A stretch of DNA of 60,329 bases, counting the filler, from Platydemus manokwari (taxonomy: Eukaryota): the NCBI GenBank assembly GCA_037951405.1. It is 6 parts of 6 records of this genome, joined end to end, with 100 filler letters (N's around TTAATTAATTAA, not from the genome) between each part and the next. Parts side by side here need not be neighbours in the genome. Positions count along the whole stretch, not along the records: positions 31,844 to 40,636 come from JBBMOY011349093.1; 5 more parts are not named here. One strand, written 5' to 3'. The number at the start of each line of letters is the position of its first letter. Positions within the stretch are counted from its first letter, which is position 1. Shown piece by piece: positions 31,844 to 40,636 of the stretch. The translations under genes were made by a program, and so were the position numbers. A model generated the notes under the pieces. That model saw nothing but the letters and a program-made list of their open reading frames with translations. It made no database searches and had not been told where the DNA came from.

Positions 31844-32299
31844 TAAACTGAATTGGTATGAATATTATTCATCGACGCCACACTATAAATTAAAATTTTG
31901 CATGCATTTTCAACAAAACTTAAAAAATTTTAATTAACCTAAGTTACTTTGGTAAAATCCTCGTAAATATCATTATTTCTATTTGAGCTTCATCCTTTAA
32001 AATCTTTTTTATGATTGCTATGTAACATAATAATATAAATTCTATTGACGTATTATCAATGTTGTTTTGTATGTTTTTTGCGTTAAATAATTTTCCAACC
32101 CATTGTATAATAAATTATACAGTTAATTTTGCATTCTCGAGATCTTATAAACTTATCACACAACACATTTCATTTTTATGTATGAATCGCTGTAACATGT
32201 TTGGTAAATATTTGTTAATATATTTCTAATGTTTGTTTTTGTTTGTTTTTCTCAAAAAATTTGTGGATTTCTAGGATTCTAAATTTGTTTCCCCACTTT

Positions 32300-33660
32300 A
32301 TATTTGAAAGGACCAGAAGTTAGATGCTGAGATCAAATGAATGATAGAAGTATTGAAACAAGAATCACCAAAAGCACAAATAACCAATGAGCAGGGTAGT
32401 GTCTTAAAATTAGATAAAAACACCCTGATGAATTACAAAATCAACAAAGAAGGGTTGTTGGTGAGGAGAAGAGATGATGGCAATGAGGTGATAGTATTAC
32501 CTAAAAAATATTGAGAGTAAATTCTATATCAATACCATGACGGTGCTTTGGGAGGACACCTGTCTAAGAGGAAAACTACATCCCGAATTCAACAGAAATA
32601 TGATTGGCTCAGTTTAACAGACGATATTAAAAACTGGTGTGAAAAGTGCCACCAGAAACAGTACAGCTCTGAACGAAAGTACCTTTAAAGCCAATCGAGC
32701 CACCGTCAAGGCCAATAGAGTTTTGTGCCATGGACAACATGGGGCCATTGCCAGAAACTCCAAAAGAACATACATATATCCTCGTGTTTATGGATTATTT
32801 TACTAAATATGCAGTAGCATTTACCATGAAAAATCAAAAAGCCGAAACTGTTGCAAAGTTGTTGATCGAAAAAATAATATTCAGATACAGGCCTCCAGAG
32901 AACCTGCTCACGGACAGAGGAACCAACTTTCTCAGTGAAGTTATACAAGAGTTAACAAGAATATTTAATACCAAAAAGTTATGTACGACGGTATACCACC
33001 CGCAAACTTATGGTTTAGTAGAGAGATATAACAAAACTTATCAAGAATTATTATCGGTAGTCATAAACAAAAGTCAAAATGACTGAAAAGACTATATGAA
33101 GATATGCCTTTGGGTGTGTAATAATACCATTAATGGCATAACCGGATATGAACCATACTTTCTTATGTATTGGAGAAGAGGGTTAATGTTGGAAGACTTA
33201 AAATTCAGCCAGCCAAATGATGCAGTATATAAGGAAGATCCAACATATAAAATGATAAAATGAAAGGCAAAATTATGGAAATATCGAGAAAAATGAAAGC
33301 AGGAGTGAAGTTTCCCTAAGAACAATATAAAAGCTATTATGATAAAAAAAGCTAAGGAACATGACTTTAAAGTGTGTTACAAAGTACGGATTTATTGCCC
33401 AGAAGTTGGAAAGGGTCTAACATCCAAACTAAATAGGCCATATAAAGGACCTTTCCAAGTGGTCAGAGCAAAGCCCACTAATTTACAGCTCGTGGATTGC
33501 AAAAAGAAGCAAGTAGACCCGATTGTTGTGCATACTAATCGATGTAAACGGGCTGAAACTGACAATACGTTTGTTAATAAAGAGGAAACGATCAAAACGA
33601 AAGCTGATCCACAACCCGAAACAACGAAAATATAACTTTAGGCAAGACGCACAGCCAACA
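32300..33660 (+). mobile_element. Ty3/Gypsy integrase region (pseudogenised)
   Basis: YHDGALGGHL...WCEKC (zinc finger), MDNMGPLP...DYFTKYA, LLTDRGTNF, YHPQTYGLVERYN (DDE core), YKGPFQV (GPY/F motif), RKYNFR terminus; several stops and frameshifts. Confidence 0.93.
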
Positions 33661-34456
33661 GCCAGGTATATAAATACCATAGGGAAAAAGACGTGGGATA
33701 TTCACGACCATGATGATTTGTTACCAGATAGACACCACCACGGCGAATTCAAATACTTCCACAATTGGAAAATCGGATGGCGACAATGGGATCGCTGGAT
33801 AACGGAGATTAAATCGAAGTATTCTTATCATACGGACGAATGGTGATTGAGACTTATAGAATACTCGGAAATCACTATAATTTTTCATTTGTAAGGTCAA
33901 CGAGTCACAGCTCAATCTTAGATAGAATAGAGCCACTACTGAAAGCTCTAAGTTCAGATGATGGGCAGGATGAGACTGAATCAAGGGTGGAATATGGGAA
34001 TTAAGATAACAAATGCAGAAGTAGATCCGCTGGAAAATGGTAATTATTTTTTACATGCTATAAAAAGATCAGCGGGTAGCATCAGCGCAACAGTAAAATA
34101 ACAAAAACCACCCATTTAATTAATAATATAAATATATGGAAGAAACAGTGTAGTATGCCAACTAATTTGGAAACCACTAAAACTTAAGAAGGCGTTGGTT
34201 CAAAATTCATTCAAGATCTACCACCATTTGTATATGCAGTTTCACTTGCATACCATTTGTCAATAAATCTATAAGTTTAAGTAAGCGATAATTTGTGTAA
34301 ACAACTGATCAATAATATAATGATGTTTATCTCTTATTATCGAGCTTTGACTCAAATTCTTTTCGCTAATGGGTTTTGCTCCTAAAGCATGGAGGTTTTA
34401 AATAGTCTCTTTGTCCTGAAAATTGAAAAGGTCCTCGTGATAGGATTAAGTTTACA

Positions 34457-35175
34457 TCGTGTGGGGAACTAACCAGGCCATTTGATCCAACCAAATTAAC
34501 CAAAAATAAATATAAATTTATATAATTTTTTTTTCAAATTAAGTCTAAAATTAAGAAAGTAATAAGGACAAAAAACTATAAATACATCCTAAAAATATCA
34601 AAAGTAAAACATGTTTTAATAAATCAAAAATTATATTTGTTTCACTACTCCAAATGATTAAAGTATAGTTTCGACCTCAAGATCATAAAAAATGATCAGT
34701 AAAGCTATTTTTGGCAACTGCGTCAGTCCTAAAGATTATTGGTTGTTACTATTTTTGGCACTGACGTATAAGTGTTGCTAATAATAGTAACCGATGTAGA
34801 GAAAATAGCTAACGTTGAACACAAAGCAGTCAAGCAGGTATAAAAGAAGAGACCAACCCACAGCTGTCGCATAATTTTGACTCAGTAAAACTTTGTATGA
34901 AAATTGGACAAAACTCATTTTTGAAGACTATTGTATGCCAAATTTGAATAGAAACTTTTGAAGACTATTGTATACCAATGTTGATTTGAAGATTTTAATG
35001 ATGCATCTCACAAGTAAATTTTTTTAACTGCTCAATTATTTTCGACAACATGGCTAGTTTTAGTCTTGAGATCTACTAAAATCAAATAGGTTTTACTTAC
35101 AGGTTCCCCACTTTCTGTATTTTGTAAGAGAGATATGCCCGGCCATCTAAGCGGCACGCTCTATACTTTTTCTAG
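34457..35175 (+). mobile_element. Non-autonomous Helitron-like element, copy 1 (719 bp)
   Basis: 5' A|TC at 34456/34457; 3' GC-rich imperfect hairpin (GCCAT-CTAA-GCGGC) then CTAG|T at 35172-35176; homologous along its length to 36289-37027 inverted. Confidence 0.75.
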
Positions 35176-36288
35176 TGGGTTCTTTTCCTTATTTTACCTG
35201 TTAATTATTTGAAAATATTTTATTGTGTTGACTTATTTTTTTACTATATCTATTTTAAATATTATTTATTATTAAAATGCCGAGTGACAGAAAGCAACAA
35301 CAACCTTTTTTGCCTGGAGTCCAGATAAGTTAAAGATTATAGCGGAAAATTATTATTAAATCCTTTTGATATAAGTATTGATCAATAATTTTTACAAATT
35401 GTATATTTTTAATTTGAACTATCAATTAATAACCTATAAAATCATTGTTATATTTATTAATTTTATCTTCATTAACCCACTAAAAATCACTGAAGTAATG
35501 ATTAATTCAATACCCAATTATATAAATTACTAGCATCAAAATATAAAAGATAGTTTTTAACTAATATTGATTCTTATTAAACGATTCCTTTGGATTTATA
35601 TTTATTTTTTTTCTAATTCGTTCATAACCTATTTAAATTCAAATTTTCTGGATAATATTCTATATTATCATTGGTAAAATTATTGTTTCGGTTACCACCC
35701 CATTTCCGAGGATTTTAAAATGTTTGTTGACGTCCAAAAGATTCGAATGTTTCAATCTGTATTTTTCGTTACTAATTAGTGCGATACAAGCCCCTCTAAA
35801 ACTCCATAAAACATAGGAAAACAAATACAATCTAAAACCTGACTTCTAATTGTCATAATCGACATAAAATAATGACACAGATTTGGCATGCAACTGGTAT
35901 TTGTTGTCAAGAATGGACATTTTTTACATTGATTCATTTAAACAAATTGTTCTAGAACATTATGTTAAAGATTGTAGATTATTAAGGTAGAACTTCGATT
36001 GAGTTCATATTAAAAATGCACAATTTTTAAAAATTTTTTGATTAATACTTATCTCAGAAGGAGTTTATAATACTATTAAGCTATAATCTTTAACTTATTT
36101 GGACTCAGCAGATAAGGTTGTTTTGCTGTAAATTGTCACTCGGTATTATTGTAGTATTACAGTAGTATTATAGTAGTATTACAGTTAAAATATAAATAAT
36201 CAAAACAAATAAGACAACATAATAAAATATTCAATTTTAAAATACTCAAAATAATTATAATTTATATTGTATTAAGCAAGAGTAACAT

Positions 36289-37027
36289 CTTGCAAAAAGT
36301 ATAGGGCGTGCCACTTAGGTGGCCGGACAAACTTCTCTCAAAAAATAAAGTGGGAACCCGAAGTTTGAGTTTAAGTTTTTTTATAGGATCACAAGGCTAA
36401 AACTAGCCATGGTCGTGTTTTAATTAAAGAAATAAAAAATTGACTCATTTTTATAACTGGAACAATGAAAATAATAAATAGTTTCCTTCTAATGTAAGCC
36501 GGTCAAGAATATTGGTTATTAAAATTCTTCTTCGAATAAATGAGATAAAACTGTGTTGTTAAATTTGTATCGTCAAAACTGTACCGATATGAAATTTGGC
36601 AAAAATGGTGACTGCTTTCGGTTTATATGTTGTTTAGAGTGCTTTGTGTACATGATTAGGCAAATTGCCTACATGTGTTACTATTTTTAGCAACGTTTAC
36701 ATGCCAGTGCTAAATCTAGTAACAACCCACAATCTTAGTTGATGATTTCACTAAATTGGGGTGATCTATTTTTAGGACTGACTTAGTTACTGAAAATAGT
36801 TTCTGACCTTGATGTCGGACAAGTAATTTAATTATTTTAAAACATATAAACAAATATAATTATTTATTTATTTAAGCACTATTTAATTTATGATATTTTG
36901 TGATTTTAATTCTTTCGCCTATTTCTATATTTACATTTTATTACCTAAATTAAAAAAAAGTTATATTGATATTTCTTATTGGTTAATCATTCGGTTGGGT
37001 TGAAATGGCTCGAATAGTTCCTCATGA
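36289..37027 (-). mobile_element. Non-autonomous Helitron-like element, copy 2 (739 bp), inverted
   Basis: On the minus strand it starts A|TCATGAGGAACT, has a perfect hairpin GCCAC-CTAA-GTGGC and ends in a degenerate CAAG. Confidence 0.7.
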
Positions 37028-37713
37028 TTCTATAAATTTTTATTTTTGGATTTAATTAAATTATTAAAGATTTTATTTAAGAATTTTTCAAAGAATATTT
37101 ATCAAGAATTTTTAATAATTTTAGGAAACTTAATTTTGTACATACTCGACACGGTGATGATTTTTTAAAAAATGAATTTAAAAGATTTTATCATTCTGTT
37201 TTATTTATTAATTTGTTTATATAAATGAAAGTTAAATCTAATTTTGTGTCGTGACTTTTCAGTTTTTTCCAATGCATGCTTCATTAAAAAGCAGCATTTT
37301 GCAAAGGTTTCAAAAAATTATTTTGATTCTACTTAGAGTCTATGATGAATCTTCTTTTTTCTACAAGATTGGTTCTCGAAACATAATGATTTTAGATCCT
37401 CTACAGATATCCATTGGTTAGAAGTGACATCACATATTAATACAAAATATCGATTTTACACTGATACAATCACTCATCAAATACATCATTAAATTAATCG
37501 AAACTGATTTGTTATAATGAATAATTTTTACTATTATGATGATACATTTTCAATTTATAACTTATTTTATGAAACTATTAGTATTTCTTAAAAATTTGAA
37601 TATTCTTGTTATCAATAATTATTTGTAACTTAATGGTTTGTTTAAATAAATTAATTTTTTAATTAAATATCCCTTTTTGCCATCGACAGTATTAAAGGAA
37701 ACCTAAATTGAAA

Positions 37714-38366
37714 ATGTCCATCCGGAAGAAGCTTGTTATTGTTGGTGATGAATGTTGCGGTAAAAAGAGTATCTTAGATGTTTTCTATAAAGACAAGTCT
37801 ACCATAAATTATGTGTCGACGGTTTATGAAAATTATATGGTTGATATTTTAATTGATTCCGAATTAGTATGGTTTTCGTTTCTATTGATGATGATCTGCT
37901 TCAATATTAGATAGGGCTGTTTCTGATAGATGTTAGCGGTCAAGAAGAATTCGATAAAACGAGGCAGTTGATCTATCCGGACACTGATGTTGTTTTGATG
38001 TGTTTCAGTATAGATTCCACTGACAGTTTTAAAAGCGTCACACAGAAATGGATACCCGAGGCAATTTATTTTGGATTAAAACTTGTGATTGGTTGATTTT
38101 AAAATCAATTAATTTCATAGGTTAAACATTTCTGTCCAAATGCACCAATCATACTTGTCGGTAACAAAAGCGATTTACGCAATGAAAACAGTGACAGGAA
38201 AGATGATAAAAACCAAATGGGAATTATCAAATATAAAAAAGGAAAATCGTTGGCTAAAAAAATTGGAGCTCACGCTTATGTTGAATGTTCAGCTAAAACA
38301 ACGAATGGGGTTCGCGAAGTGTTTGAAACAGCAACTAAAGCAGCATTGAAATTGAAGAAAAAATAA
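37714..38366 (+). CDS. Divergent RhoA/Rho1-family small GTPase; exons 37714-37866, 37911-38060, 38121-38366; 182 aa
   Basis: Spliced protein follows RhoA throughout ([69 protein letters not shown]). Intron 1 is 44 nt GT-AG; intron 2 is 60 nt GC-AG. Confidence 0.93.
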
Positions 38367-38693
38367 AAAAGTGAGATTAAATGAGAACTAAAATAATTAA
38401 TTAATTATTTATTCCATGATTGGGGAGGGAATACTTATGCTGAATATCTCTGATATTATCGATAAATCCAAGATATATTTGTTAATTTGTATGTTTAATA
38501 ACGCTTAAATCTATCGTTAAGCATAATTATTGGATGGCTTTTAATCTCGAGTCACAAATAATAATTTATTTATTTTATCTGAAAAAAACTTTTGTGAATA
38601 AAAATATTTATTTGATATAATTGCTTGTCAATATCAAAATATTAAATTAATTGAGCTTTGCTATGAATAAAGATGAGAATTGTGTTTTTAATA

Positions 38694-39165
38694 TGTTGGG
38701 TGAGTCGCAAAAGCAAGCAAAATAGCCACGAAAACCATGGAAATGACCACTAAAGAGTCTGTGCTTACATATTCGACAGGCACACTTGCCAATGCTCAAT
38801 GAGATTCTTCCTAATCATCAGTGTGTAGTGAGAGCTCAATGATCAATTGGTGCATACCGAAATCAGGCAATAAACATCGACCTACGCTAATACAAACCGA
38901 CTTGTGAACGACTTTAATGGTTGGAAATAGATTTTCGGAGACAAAAAATTATCACACACAATACACACGCAATAGGAGTCGGATTTCACGAGCGTCAGTT
39001 AGTCCTTTTGGTCGCTAACTTTTATTATGTGCGACTTGTGTGATTTTCTGACAATCAGTACTAGTAGTTGTCTTTTGTTTTGCTGTTTAACTTTCAGATG
39101 GTGATGTCATTTTGCGTTGATTATCCCTGGTTAATTTTACCTTATTTTAATATTAATTGGTGACA
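38694..39165 (+). mobile_element. Possible solo LTR of another family
   Basis: GC-richer non-coding island with TGTTG...TGACA ends; no TSD or second copy confirmed. Confidence 0.25.
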
Positions 39166-40636
39166 ATTCATGTTTCGTAATCTATTGTTCTTCATAATTT
39201 AATTTTATATAAAATTAAATCTACAAAACTTTAATTCAATTTTAAATGCTCACATCCTTCTTTCTTTAAAATCTTTGATTTACTTTGTAATCTTCTATCG
39301 AATACTCTACATATTTATCTACGAATTATCTTTTATTATTCTAATTTTTCATATCTCCTCTAAATCTTCTTTTTATAATCCAAACATCTTCATCTTCCTT
39401 TTCCATAATTCTCTGAATCAAATCCAAATGCGTGGTCGCCATGTAAGCCACAACTATTTTATAAGAGACACATCAGTTGATAAAATAGAAAATAGATAAA
39501 AATTAAAAATTAAATATATTTAGTTTAAATAATATATATTTTATTTATTTTTTCAATTTTGGTGAATTTTCAATAATAAAGGATTATCGAATTTAAAATA
39601 AAAATTAAATAAGATTAAAATTTTAAAATAAACGTAAATAATGGTTGACTCCTTTTCTTTGCTTGATTAGTAAAATTAAAAACTATATTACCAAAAATAC
39701 CACAATCGTAATCTCAACAAATACAAGTAAACCTCTACAACTCATAATGGTTATAAACACATGACAGAATCAGCACCCGAAAGTCAAAAACAAAATAGAA
39801 AGTAATCAAAAATACTGATTGTTGAAAATCACAGATAAGTTACCGACCAAAAAGACTTGCTGTTACTCATAGAACTCAACCTCTTTTATAGACCAATCGG
39901 TCGTGTCTGCTTGATGTCACGTAGATTGTTCTTAAATTTTCCTCGTATATCTTATGCTGTTGACAGATTTTTTAGTTTGCTGTCATTTGTAGACATGTGC
40001 TTGTCGATTATTAACTTCTAAATATGGATTAATATTAGAACGAATCTGATTGGCTGATGGTACATGTGTATCTATGTGTGTTATTTCCTTGATTCTTGTA
40101 CCTCTTTTGATTGATTTGTGATCTACTATTGATTCATTAAAGTAAAAATCTCTTAATTTGTTTGTTGAATAAAATCTTTATAATAAAGAATATATTTAAA
40201 AGTTATATATGAGTCCTCTGAGTTCCTAATTTATAATTACGAAATACTTCTATATATATATGGATGTCATTAGACAATTTTATTCGACAAAATGTCATGA
40301 ATGTGCTTTACCAAAAGGTGATTAATTGTGTGTTGTTTATTCCGAATCTCACAGATATAAATATTAAATCTGTCATAAAAATTTATAAATTTATATTTTA
40401 CCACACATTATCAGATAACTTATCATAACCAATCAATAATATTTATATTGGATTACATTTCAGAATCTGAATGGCCACGATTGAACTTTAATAATCGAAT
40501 ATCAATAGAATCGATAATTAATCATCTGAACATATTGAATCATATTGAATTATCGTGTATTATGATTAATCACGTGGATATAATCAATAAAAGTTTTTAT
40601 TATATATTTTCATTAAATAATCACAATAACGGTTGT

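Follow-up and report, generated by a model that had tools for sequence, protein, structure and literature searches.

A RhoA-derived gene of Platydemus manokwari with an altered P-loop, a rewritten switch II and no CAAX box is a candidate non-cycling Rho

Positions 37714–38366 (plus strand) of a Platydemus manokwari sequence hold an intact three-exon RhoA-like gene, exact translation of which gives a product of 182 aa with phase 0 at all junctions. From comparison with Rho proteins and their genes we judge, with moderate confidence, that this intron-bearing gene belongs to a small, undescribed RhoA-derived lineage and would encode a soluble, non-cycling Rho-like protein, of the atypical Rho or pseudoGTPase kind, that binds a partner through switch II. 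A relative with similar alterations, found in other public samples, points to a Rho-like protein that has been selected without being a switch, and away from mere decay of the gene. An earlier sequence-only reading had described a RhoA paralogue with a rewired P-loop as a candidate non-cycling Rho; that description stands, and it gains support from signs of selection and from a relative with parallel lesions. The window, that is, the whole stretch of DNA from which the gene was taken, is 60,329 nucleotides long (assembly GCA_037951405.1, filler included); our analysis covers the piece of it at 31844–40636 (JBBMOY011349093.1), with database queries run exon by exon and unspliced. The gene is organized as follows.

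37714–37866, plus strand: exon 1, 51 aa by translation, comprising Met, β1, the P-loop, α1, switch I and β2
37867–37910, plus strand: intron 1, 44 nt, GT..AG, phase 0, between RhoA codons 52 and 53
37911–38060, plus strand: exon 2, 50 aa by translation, comprising β3, G3, switch II, β4 and the start of α3
38061–38120, plus strand: intron 2, 60 nt, GC..AG (GAG/GCAATT...TCATAG, the slash marking the junction)
38121–38366, plus strand: exon 3, 81 aa plus the TAA stop at 38364–38366, comprising α3, β5, the Rho insert, β6 and α5

Translation of the exons gives zero internal stops and zero frameshifts, confirming to the base the earlier statement that the frame is intact across three exons. The frame is intact, yet its stop falls 9 codons short of where canonical proteins end, and the donor of intron 2 is GC. 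The use of this donor is supported because the RhoA alignment passes from residue 102 to residue 103 without a gap; an alternative GT donor at 38085 would insert 8 aa in frame, within helix α3. A relative of the gene on contig L006 (described below) has no intron at the intron-2 site and reads E-V uninterrupted there, and GAG/GCAA is a good context when set against the usual GC-donor consensus. With two introns, the first at a position common to this relative, the gene does not show the absence of introns that, with a poly(A) remnant, is the hallmark of a processed pseudogene. An AATAAA hexamer at 38362–38367 overlaps the stop codon.

All three exons match the Pfam Ras profile (PF00071) above its curated cut-off of 21.6 bits: exon 1 at 26.5 bits (5e-6, profile positions 1–45), exon 2 at 40 bits (4e-10, positions 50–95) and exon 3 at 49.1 bits (positions 98–160). 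Among solved structures, the best match of every exon is human RhoA/B/C (RhoA/RhoB for exon 2), and the three matches are collinear over residues 1–50, 55–102 and 103–182 and ungapped across both exon junctions. Exon 3 aligns to RhoA 103–182 at 1e-24 with the Rho insert (β5–α4) included and with one 1-aa gap. In the same search RhoA, RhoB or RhoC came ahead of Rnd3, Rac1 and Cdc42 for all three exons. As judged from these matches, the gene is a member of the RhoA/B/C (Rho proper) subfamily.

Against this conserved background the functional motifs were compared with those of RhoA and of a non-redundant panel of 17 Rho G domains with canonical motifs. RhoA numbering, used throughout, is this protein's own numbering plus 1.

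37744–37767, plus strand: P-loop GDECCGKK, with G14E (GAA at 37750–37752), A15C and T19K (AAG at 37765–37767); G12, G17 and K18 kept
37798–37800, plus strand: F30S, from the RhoA alignment, in a column that is invariant in the panel
37810–37836, plus strand: switch I YVSTVYENY, with P36S and F39Y; T37, E40 and N41 kept
37929–37943, plus strand: G3 DVSGQ, with T60V and A61S; D59, G62 and Q63 kept
37953–37970, plus strand: switch II DKTRQL, with R68K, L69T and P71Q
38163–38174, plus strand: G4 NKSD, kept
38289–38297, plus strand: G5 SAK, kept

The motifs quoted in the sequence-only reading were all found: the P-loop GDECCGKK lies at the positions above, GAA and AAG codons included, and YVSTVYENY, LIDVSGQ, NKxD, SAK and the catalytic Gln read as it gave them. 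It had left unrecorded the loss of the CAAX box, the F30S and W58I changes, the rewriting of switch II to DKTRQL and the GC donor of intron 2. In the P-loop, Lys in place of Thr19 breaks the Walker A pattern GxxxxGK[S/T]; this column shows no variation across the 17 panel sequences, and Ser/Thr is missing from it in only a few oddities among 389 Rho proteins that we fetched. The Gly at the Ras G12/RhoA G14 position, which permits GAP-assisted hydrolysis, is replaced by Glu. With F30 the gene has lost the aromatic side chain that sits above the guanine base in RhoA. In the RhoA alignment, T37, E40, N41 and Y42 of the switch I core are retained. In exon 2, W58, directly before DVSGQ, is Ile, the canonical switch II QEDYDRLRPLSYP has been rewritten and now carries DKTRQL, and A61, D65, Y66, R68, L69 and S73 are changed as well, as seen from the alignment and the panel. 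The motifs of a functional GTPase that are present are DxxG with its catalytic Gln (DVSGQ), [NT]KxD (NKSD) and SAK. The gene resembles canonical RhoA/Rho1 in fold family, exon collinearity, Rho insert, DxxGQ, NKxD and SAK, and differs from it by G14E, A15C, T19K, F30S, W58I, DKTRQL and the lack of a CAAX box.

The C-terminus, KAALKLKKK followed by the stop, is polybasic, with 0 Cys in its last 25 residues, and the CAAX box is gone; just downstream of the stop, the other two frames offer no Cys. A CAAX box or another Cys lipidation signal is the Rho family's ancestral condition (PMC13393502). There is a consensus-like donor, GTGAGA, at 38370; since it follows the in-frame stop, it cannot add a CAAX exon in the present sequence.

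Relatives of the gene were sought in several ways. When the ORFs of exons 1 and 3 were looked up exactly in a gene-position collection, no record came back. A word search with exon 1 (51 aa) gave no candidates, under a length window that leaves full-length proteins uncovered, and one with exon 3 returned canonical RhoA fragments only, at up to 64% identity. A profile-free search with exon 3 of 1.8 billion representatives gave 4771 matches, none above 62% identity save artefactual tandem models, so that neither the protein itself nor any close orthologue is represented, unless concealed within 50% clusters. In JGI metagenomes, a degenerate DNA pattern for VGDECCGKK matched twice, both times by chance in GC-rich, non-GTPase frames.

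A word search with a profile, for which the rows of the three exons had been aligned to a rare scaffold, found two canonical Rho1 proteins of 193 aa, P0359 and P0354, on the AT-rich, intronless metatranscriptome contigs L003 and L004. The GC3 of these contigs is 0.28, as in this gene, and the two proteins share with it the 1-aa deletion in the Rho insert. The identity to them is 72% in exon 3, the normally more variable C-terminal part, but drops to 61% in exon 1 and 58% in exon 2 (58–61% over the N-terminal 102 residues). This is the reverse of the usual RhoA pattern, in which the N-terminal 100 residues hardly vary. A 202-row tree of exon 3 lacked resolution and was replaced by a 77-row tree, in which this exon forms a clade with P0359, P0354 and a third protein, P0101 (UFBoot 98, SH-aLRT 82). 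Just outside this clade, at a support of only 61–79, stands among other rows a Rho1 fragment from Protopolystoma, a monogenean flatworm, which is the sole sign of flatworm affinity in these comparisons.

The Logan contigs L005 (SRR23782938) and L006 (ERR14173670) carry P0101 and P0390, two proteins of one cluster that are 98% identical. In a census of DKTRQL across the 389 fetched Rho proteins, P0101/P0390 were the only carriers besides this gene, and the canonical EDYDRLRPLSYP was counted 214 times. The gene on L006 has its first exon at 319–483, with the P-loop GGSNCGKD, followed by an 84-nt GT..AG intron identical in position and phase to intron 1 here and by a second exon that reaches the stop, with a tail that has no Cys and no CAAX box. 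P0101/P0390 keep TKQD and SAK, read NTE[G/S]G where DTAGQ is expected, and have DKTRQL in switch II. The features of the group are DKTRQL, a non-Gly residue at position 14 (E here, S in the relative), loss of the Mg2+-binding Thr19 (K here, D in the relative) and loss of the CAAX box; G12, G17, K18, G4 and G5 are kept by both members, as are, to judge from the alignment, helix α5 and the core strands. The two are alike in DKTRQL, the position and phase of intron 1, non-Gly14, the lost P-loop Thr, G4/G5, the absent CAAX box and the exon-3 clade; they differ in that the relative has Asp rather than Lys in the P-loop, a degenerate G3 that lacks Gln63, a far more changed switch I with F30 kept, no intron 2 and another tail.

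P0101/P0390 are 46–56% identical to this protein, and no closer relative was found among the proteins searched. The changes in the two are correlated: among 86 conserved columns, 16 are changed in both, 7 here only, 13 in P0101/P0390 only and 50 in neither (odds ratio 8.8, p = 5e-5). At five of these co-changed columns, three of them adjacent, this protein and P0101/P0390 carry identical derived residues. The reading frame of the relative is protected, as the 873 aligned nt of L005 and L006 contain 11 gap openings and none falls in the 420 coding bases (p = 7e-4); pN/pS between the two contigs is 0.35, a value that comes from nine differing bases. Our reading is that both genes would descend from one old Rho1 duplicate in which switch II had already changed, and which has been kept coding since. 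That duplicate had probably lost its anchor before the two genes split. The case for a selected lineage, as read from these alignments, rests on one relative, P0101/P0390. L005 and L006 could stem from near relations of this organism, or from carriers of a paralogue in the same genus. We found no paper on such a Rho-derived family, flatworm Rho families included. In the Rho-insert region of the relative (L006 780–812, L005 299–331) there is a 33-nt stretch of the form GT..TTTTCTTTTCAG, which could be a very short in-frame intron; spliced out, it would leave the insert 11 residues shorter.

Other RhoA-like proteins with broken P-loops are present in the databases, and the phenomenon is therefore not unique to this gene. 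These include GDRNSGKK (P0070), GDDEGAKL and GDSNVGKN (from the set P0070, P0138, P0106 and P0005) and a RhoA-like protein of Drosophila innubila (XP_034477791.1) with a one-residue deletion in the P-loop. P0070 is RhoA-derived, has a GKK P-loop and lacks a CAAX box like the protein studied here, and differs in that G4 and G5 are lost as well; at 38–51% identity and without DKTRQL it was rejected as a relative. Canonical RhoA is at least as close to this gene as P0070, P0138 and XP_034477791.1 are, and these three lack DKTRQL. Rho1 duplicates seem to have decayed or been repurposed repeatedly, in different lineages.

Several comparisons bear on whether the gene has been under selection. Departures from the panel consensus climb with column variability, from 20% of invariant columns (8/41) through 33% of columns that are 75–94% conserved (15/45) to 56% of variable columns (53/95), indicating that the changes avoided conserved positions. 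Of the 86 conserved columns, 32 lie in the P-loop, switch I and switch II and 54 outside them; 15 of the former and 8 of the latter are changed (odds ratio 5.1, Fisher p = 0.002), and only one of the 19 invariant columns of exon 3 is changed. The replacements at conserved columns are conservative, with a mean BLOSUM62 score of +0.39 versus −0.54 ± 0.36 under a null of random single-nucleotide replacements that follow local base composition (p = 0.006), and this also holds within the switch regions alone (p = 0.02). In neutral simulations, 23 changes at conserved columns need ~0.15 substitutions per site, a distance at which the three exons remain stop-free in ~2% of runs with indels not yet counted; at neutral d up to 0.05, an open frame is still 20–50% likely. 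Relative to the nearest canonical transcript, L003, dN is 0.23 overall with synonymous sites saturated. In exon 3, dS to L003 is ~1.4 and dN/dS is ~0.12, and in exons 1 and 2 dN/dS to the canonical transcripts is only a bound because dS is saturated. The canonical transcripts L003 and L004 are separated by a dN of 0.012 and a dS of 0.41. As judged from column conservation and codon comparison, most of the gene's divergence is filtered by selection, which makes a long-dead pseudogene unlikely.

Among public sequencing runs, one only (X1) holds the stretch, with no RNA run among the holders, and X1 is probably the source sample and hence not independent support. The first of its contig records (37393–38040, 648 nt), which spans exon 1 and most of exon 2 at a word depth of 8.8, matches across exon 1 and lists no other letter in the P-loop. 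A second contig covers 38042–38345, from the end of exon 2 through intron 2 and across most of exon 3, at a word depth of 17.4, two depths that should not be ranked against each other. The contigs of this run show a C/T difference at 38041, and additional contigs of at least 90% likeness stack on 37963–38064, one with 1-nt and 2-nt deletions at 37983 and 37987. This pattern may reflect a second copy or allele that shares the 3' half, or close paralogues. One further contig joins 37670 to 38590 and so bypasses the whole gene; the shorter side of the joint is only 21 letters long and AT-rich, and the joint is most likely a repeat artefact.

The selected-lineage reading has to be weighed against others, the most substantial being that the gene is a recently inactivated duplicate. 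This explanation, which we regard as unlikely though serious, supposes a long-selected, diverged Rho paralogue that then suffered the P-loop hits, F30S, a nonsense change in the polybasic tail and a GT-to-GC change in a splice donor and that has yet to gain an internal stop or frameshift. It accounts for the several independent hits on elements essential to canonical Rho function: G14E, T19K, F30S, the early stop and the GC donor on intron 2 would each singly fit a dying gene, and the loss of the CAAX box might go back to one AAA-to-TAA change in the Lys run. The surroundings are rich in transposon remains, no RNA run is among the public holders of the locus, and in 20–50% of cases an open frame would survive a slight neutral divergence (d up to 0.05). 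However, non-Gly14, the loss of T19 and the loss of the CAAX box recur in P0101/P0390, where the frame is protected from indels, and they look like lineage features rather than fresh damage. In addition, the switch-region replacements are conservative, G4 and G5 have escaped change, as have all but one of the 19 invariant columns of exon 3, and the GC donor has its good GAG/GCAA context. Of the young pseudogene that the sequence-only reading had offered, a recent death is possible, and both the signs of selection and the relative disfavor it. An assembly or sequencing artefact at the diagnostic codons is extremely improbable. The stretch is found in a single public run, probably the source sample, and so has no independent confirmation, but the 648-nt contig agrees over exon 1 with no alternative letters in the P-loop, and the 76 differences from RhoA are spread through the protein rather than confined to two codons.

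If the gene is functional, two other roles come into question. One is an endogenous GEF trap that, like RhoA T19N, would have low nucleotide affinity, lock RhoGEFs and damp Rho signaling, close to the GEF decoy of the sequence-only reading. We consider this improbable. The replacement of T19 fits it, F30S should raise nucleotide off-rates, and T37, E40, N41 and Y42 of the switch I core are kept; yet W58, A61, L69 and S73 are changed, as are D65, Y66 and R68, and in RhoA–DH structures W58 and these switch II residues contact Dbl-family GEFs. Moreover, the switch I and G3 of the relative are still more altered while DKTRQL is kept, suggesting a new interface rather than the old GEF interface, and there is no lipid anchor with which to meet membrane-bound GEFs. 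The decoy proposal is, on these grounds, unsupported. The other role is that of an ordinary cycling GTPase in which the odd P-loop is tolerated, Mg-GTP is hydrolyzed, regulation is Rho1-like and the polybasic tail targets the membrane. D59, G62, Q63, T37, K18, NKSD and SAK are indeed all present, and the tail is polybasic. Nevertheless, we think this very improbable: the T19 column is invariant in the panel, with few exceptions among the 389 fetched proteins, F30 is lost, there is no CAAX box, and a non-Gly residue at the G12-equivalent makes Rnd and RhoH GTPase-deficient (PMC13236570).

The non-cycling Rho-like protein that we favor can be set beside several known systems. Rnd1–3 and RhoH escape GAP control, do not cycle and have a non-Gly residue at the G12-equivalent (PMC13236570). 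The protein studied here likewise has a non-Gly residue there and is predicted not to cycle, with T19K and F30S arguing for weakened or altered GTP binding. In Rnd1–3 and RhoH the P-loop Ser/Thr is retained, GTP-Mg is bound tightly and there is a lipid modification, whereas here the P-loop Thr and the lipid anchor are both lost. Orthology to these proteins was ruled out, as RhoA scores above Rnd3. RhoA T19N is dominant negative. The gene naturally alters that position and also the position changed in the fast-cycling RhoA F30L (PMC11339415); in contrast to these engineered mutants, it has Lys instead of Asn at position 19 and combines the two changes with G14E, switch II changes and the loss of the anchor. 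PseudoGTPases of class i neither bind nor hydrolyze nucleotide, and the AAGAB N-domain, which is without the conserved G-motif residues, does not bind it (PMC12490416). The AAGAB N-domain and the p190RhoGAP pG1/pG2 domains are proposed to act by protein binding (PMC12490416; PMC5593906). The GTPase fold (by homology) and the altered G motifs are shared with class i. Unlike in AAGAB, though, G3, G4, G5 and the P-loop Lys remain, so that loss of nucleotide binding is not implied, and the protein looks more like a nucleotide-binding, non-hydrolyzing type than a class i pseudoGTPase.

The mechanism that we propose begins with derivation from the canonical RhoA/Rho1 of the gene's own lineage. With the fold, the P-loop glycines, Lys18, NKxD/TKxD and SAK kept, guanine nucleotide would probably still be held, perhaps weakly or without Mg2+ in the presence of T19K and F30S; the loss of Thr19 and Phe30 would be expected to give weaker Mg2+-dependent nucleotide binding or faster exchange. 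It is a speculation that the ammonium group of the Lys at position 19 might stand in for Mg2+. G14E should leave RhoGAP unable to switch the protein off and, lacking prenylation, the protein would be neither anchored in the membrane nor handled by RhoGDI and would be soluble. Its activity would then consist in partner binding through the conserved new switch II surface rather than in switching. Because DKTRQL sits in switch II, one of the main surfaces through which Rho proteins contact GEFs, GAPs and effectors, the partner is expected to be new or narrowed. A wider proposal, which we put forward only tentatively, is that there is a conserved RhoA-derived family, possibly a flatworm one, defined by a charged residue in place of Thr19, no CAAX box and DKTRQL, whose members might be soluble modulators of Rho signaling that are nucleotide-free or bound to nucleotide without Mg2+ and that act through a new partner.

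Non-cycling Rho proteins (Rnd, RhoH and RhoBTB) and pseudoGTPases form a small and much-studied set, and to our knowledge nearly all cases come from vertebrates. The gene unites positions known from 'constitutively active', 'dominant negative' and 'fast cycling' forms with the loss of the lipid anchor. If selected in more than one organism, it would be a natural RhoA derivative that shows what uses the Rho fold has once switching ends, and the signature of DKTRQL, GK[K/D] and no CAAX box could, if the proposal is true, retrieve the rest of the family; if it is merely a dying duplicate, it is ordinary.

Within the piece at 31844–40636, a tblastn search for a further Rho gene found none, and Rfam and tRNA scans found no RNA gene. 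Upstream, at 32341–33635 on the plus strand, lies a decayed Ty3/gypsy-type retrotransposon integrase, in which Integrase_H2C2 (32548–32685) and the rve core (32730–33083) are in different frames, the element being frameshifted. Tandem repeats occur at 36143–36194 and 34919–34992, with an 11/22-nt unit in ~4 copies and a 37-nt unit in two copies. A large imperfect inverted repeat occupies 34600–36890, in the tested ORFs of which there was no Pfam match; its collinear arms of ~0.8 kb are 70–83% complementary about a center near 35700, and its origin could lie in a foldback-type element or in an ancient inverted duplication.
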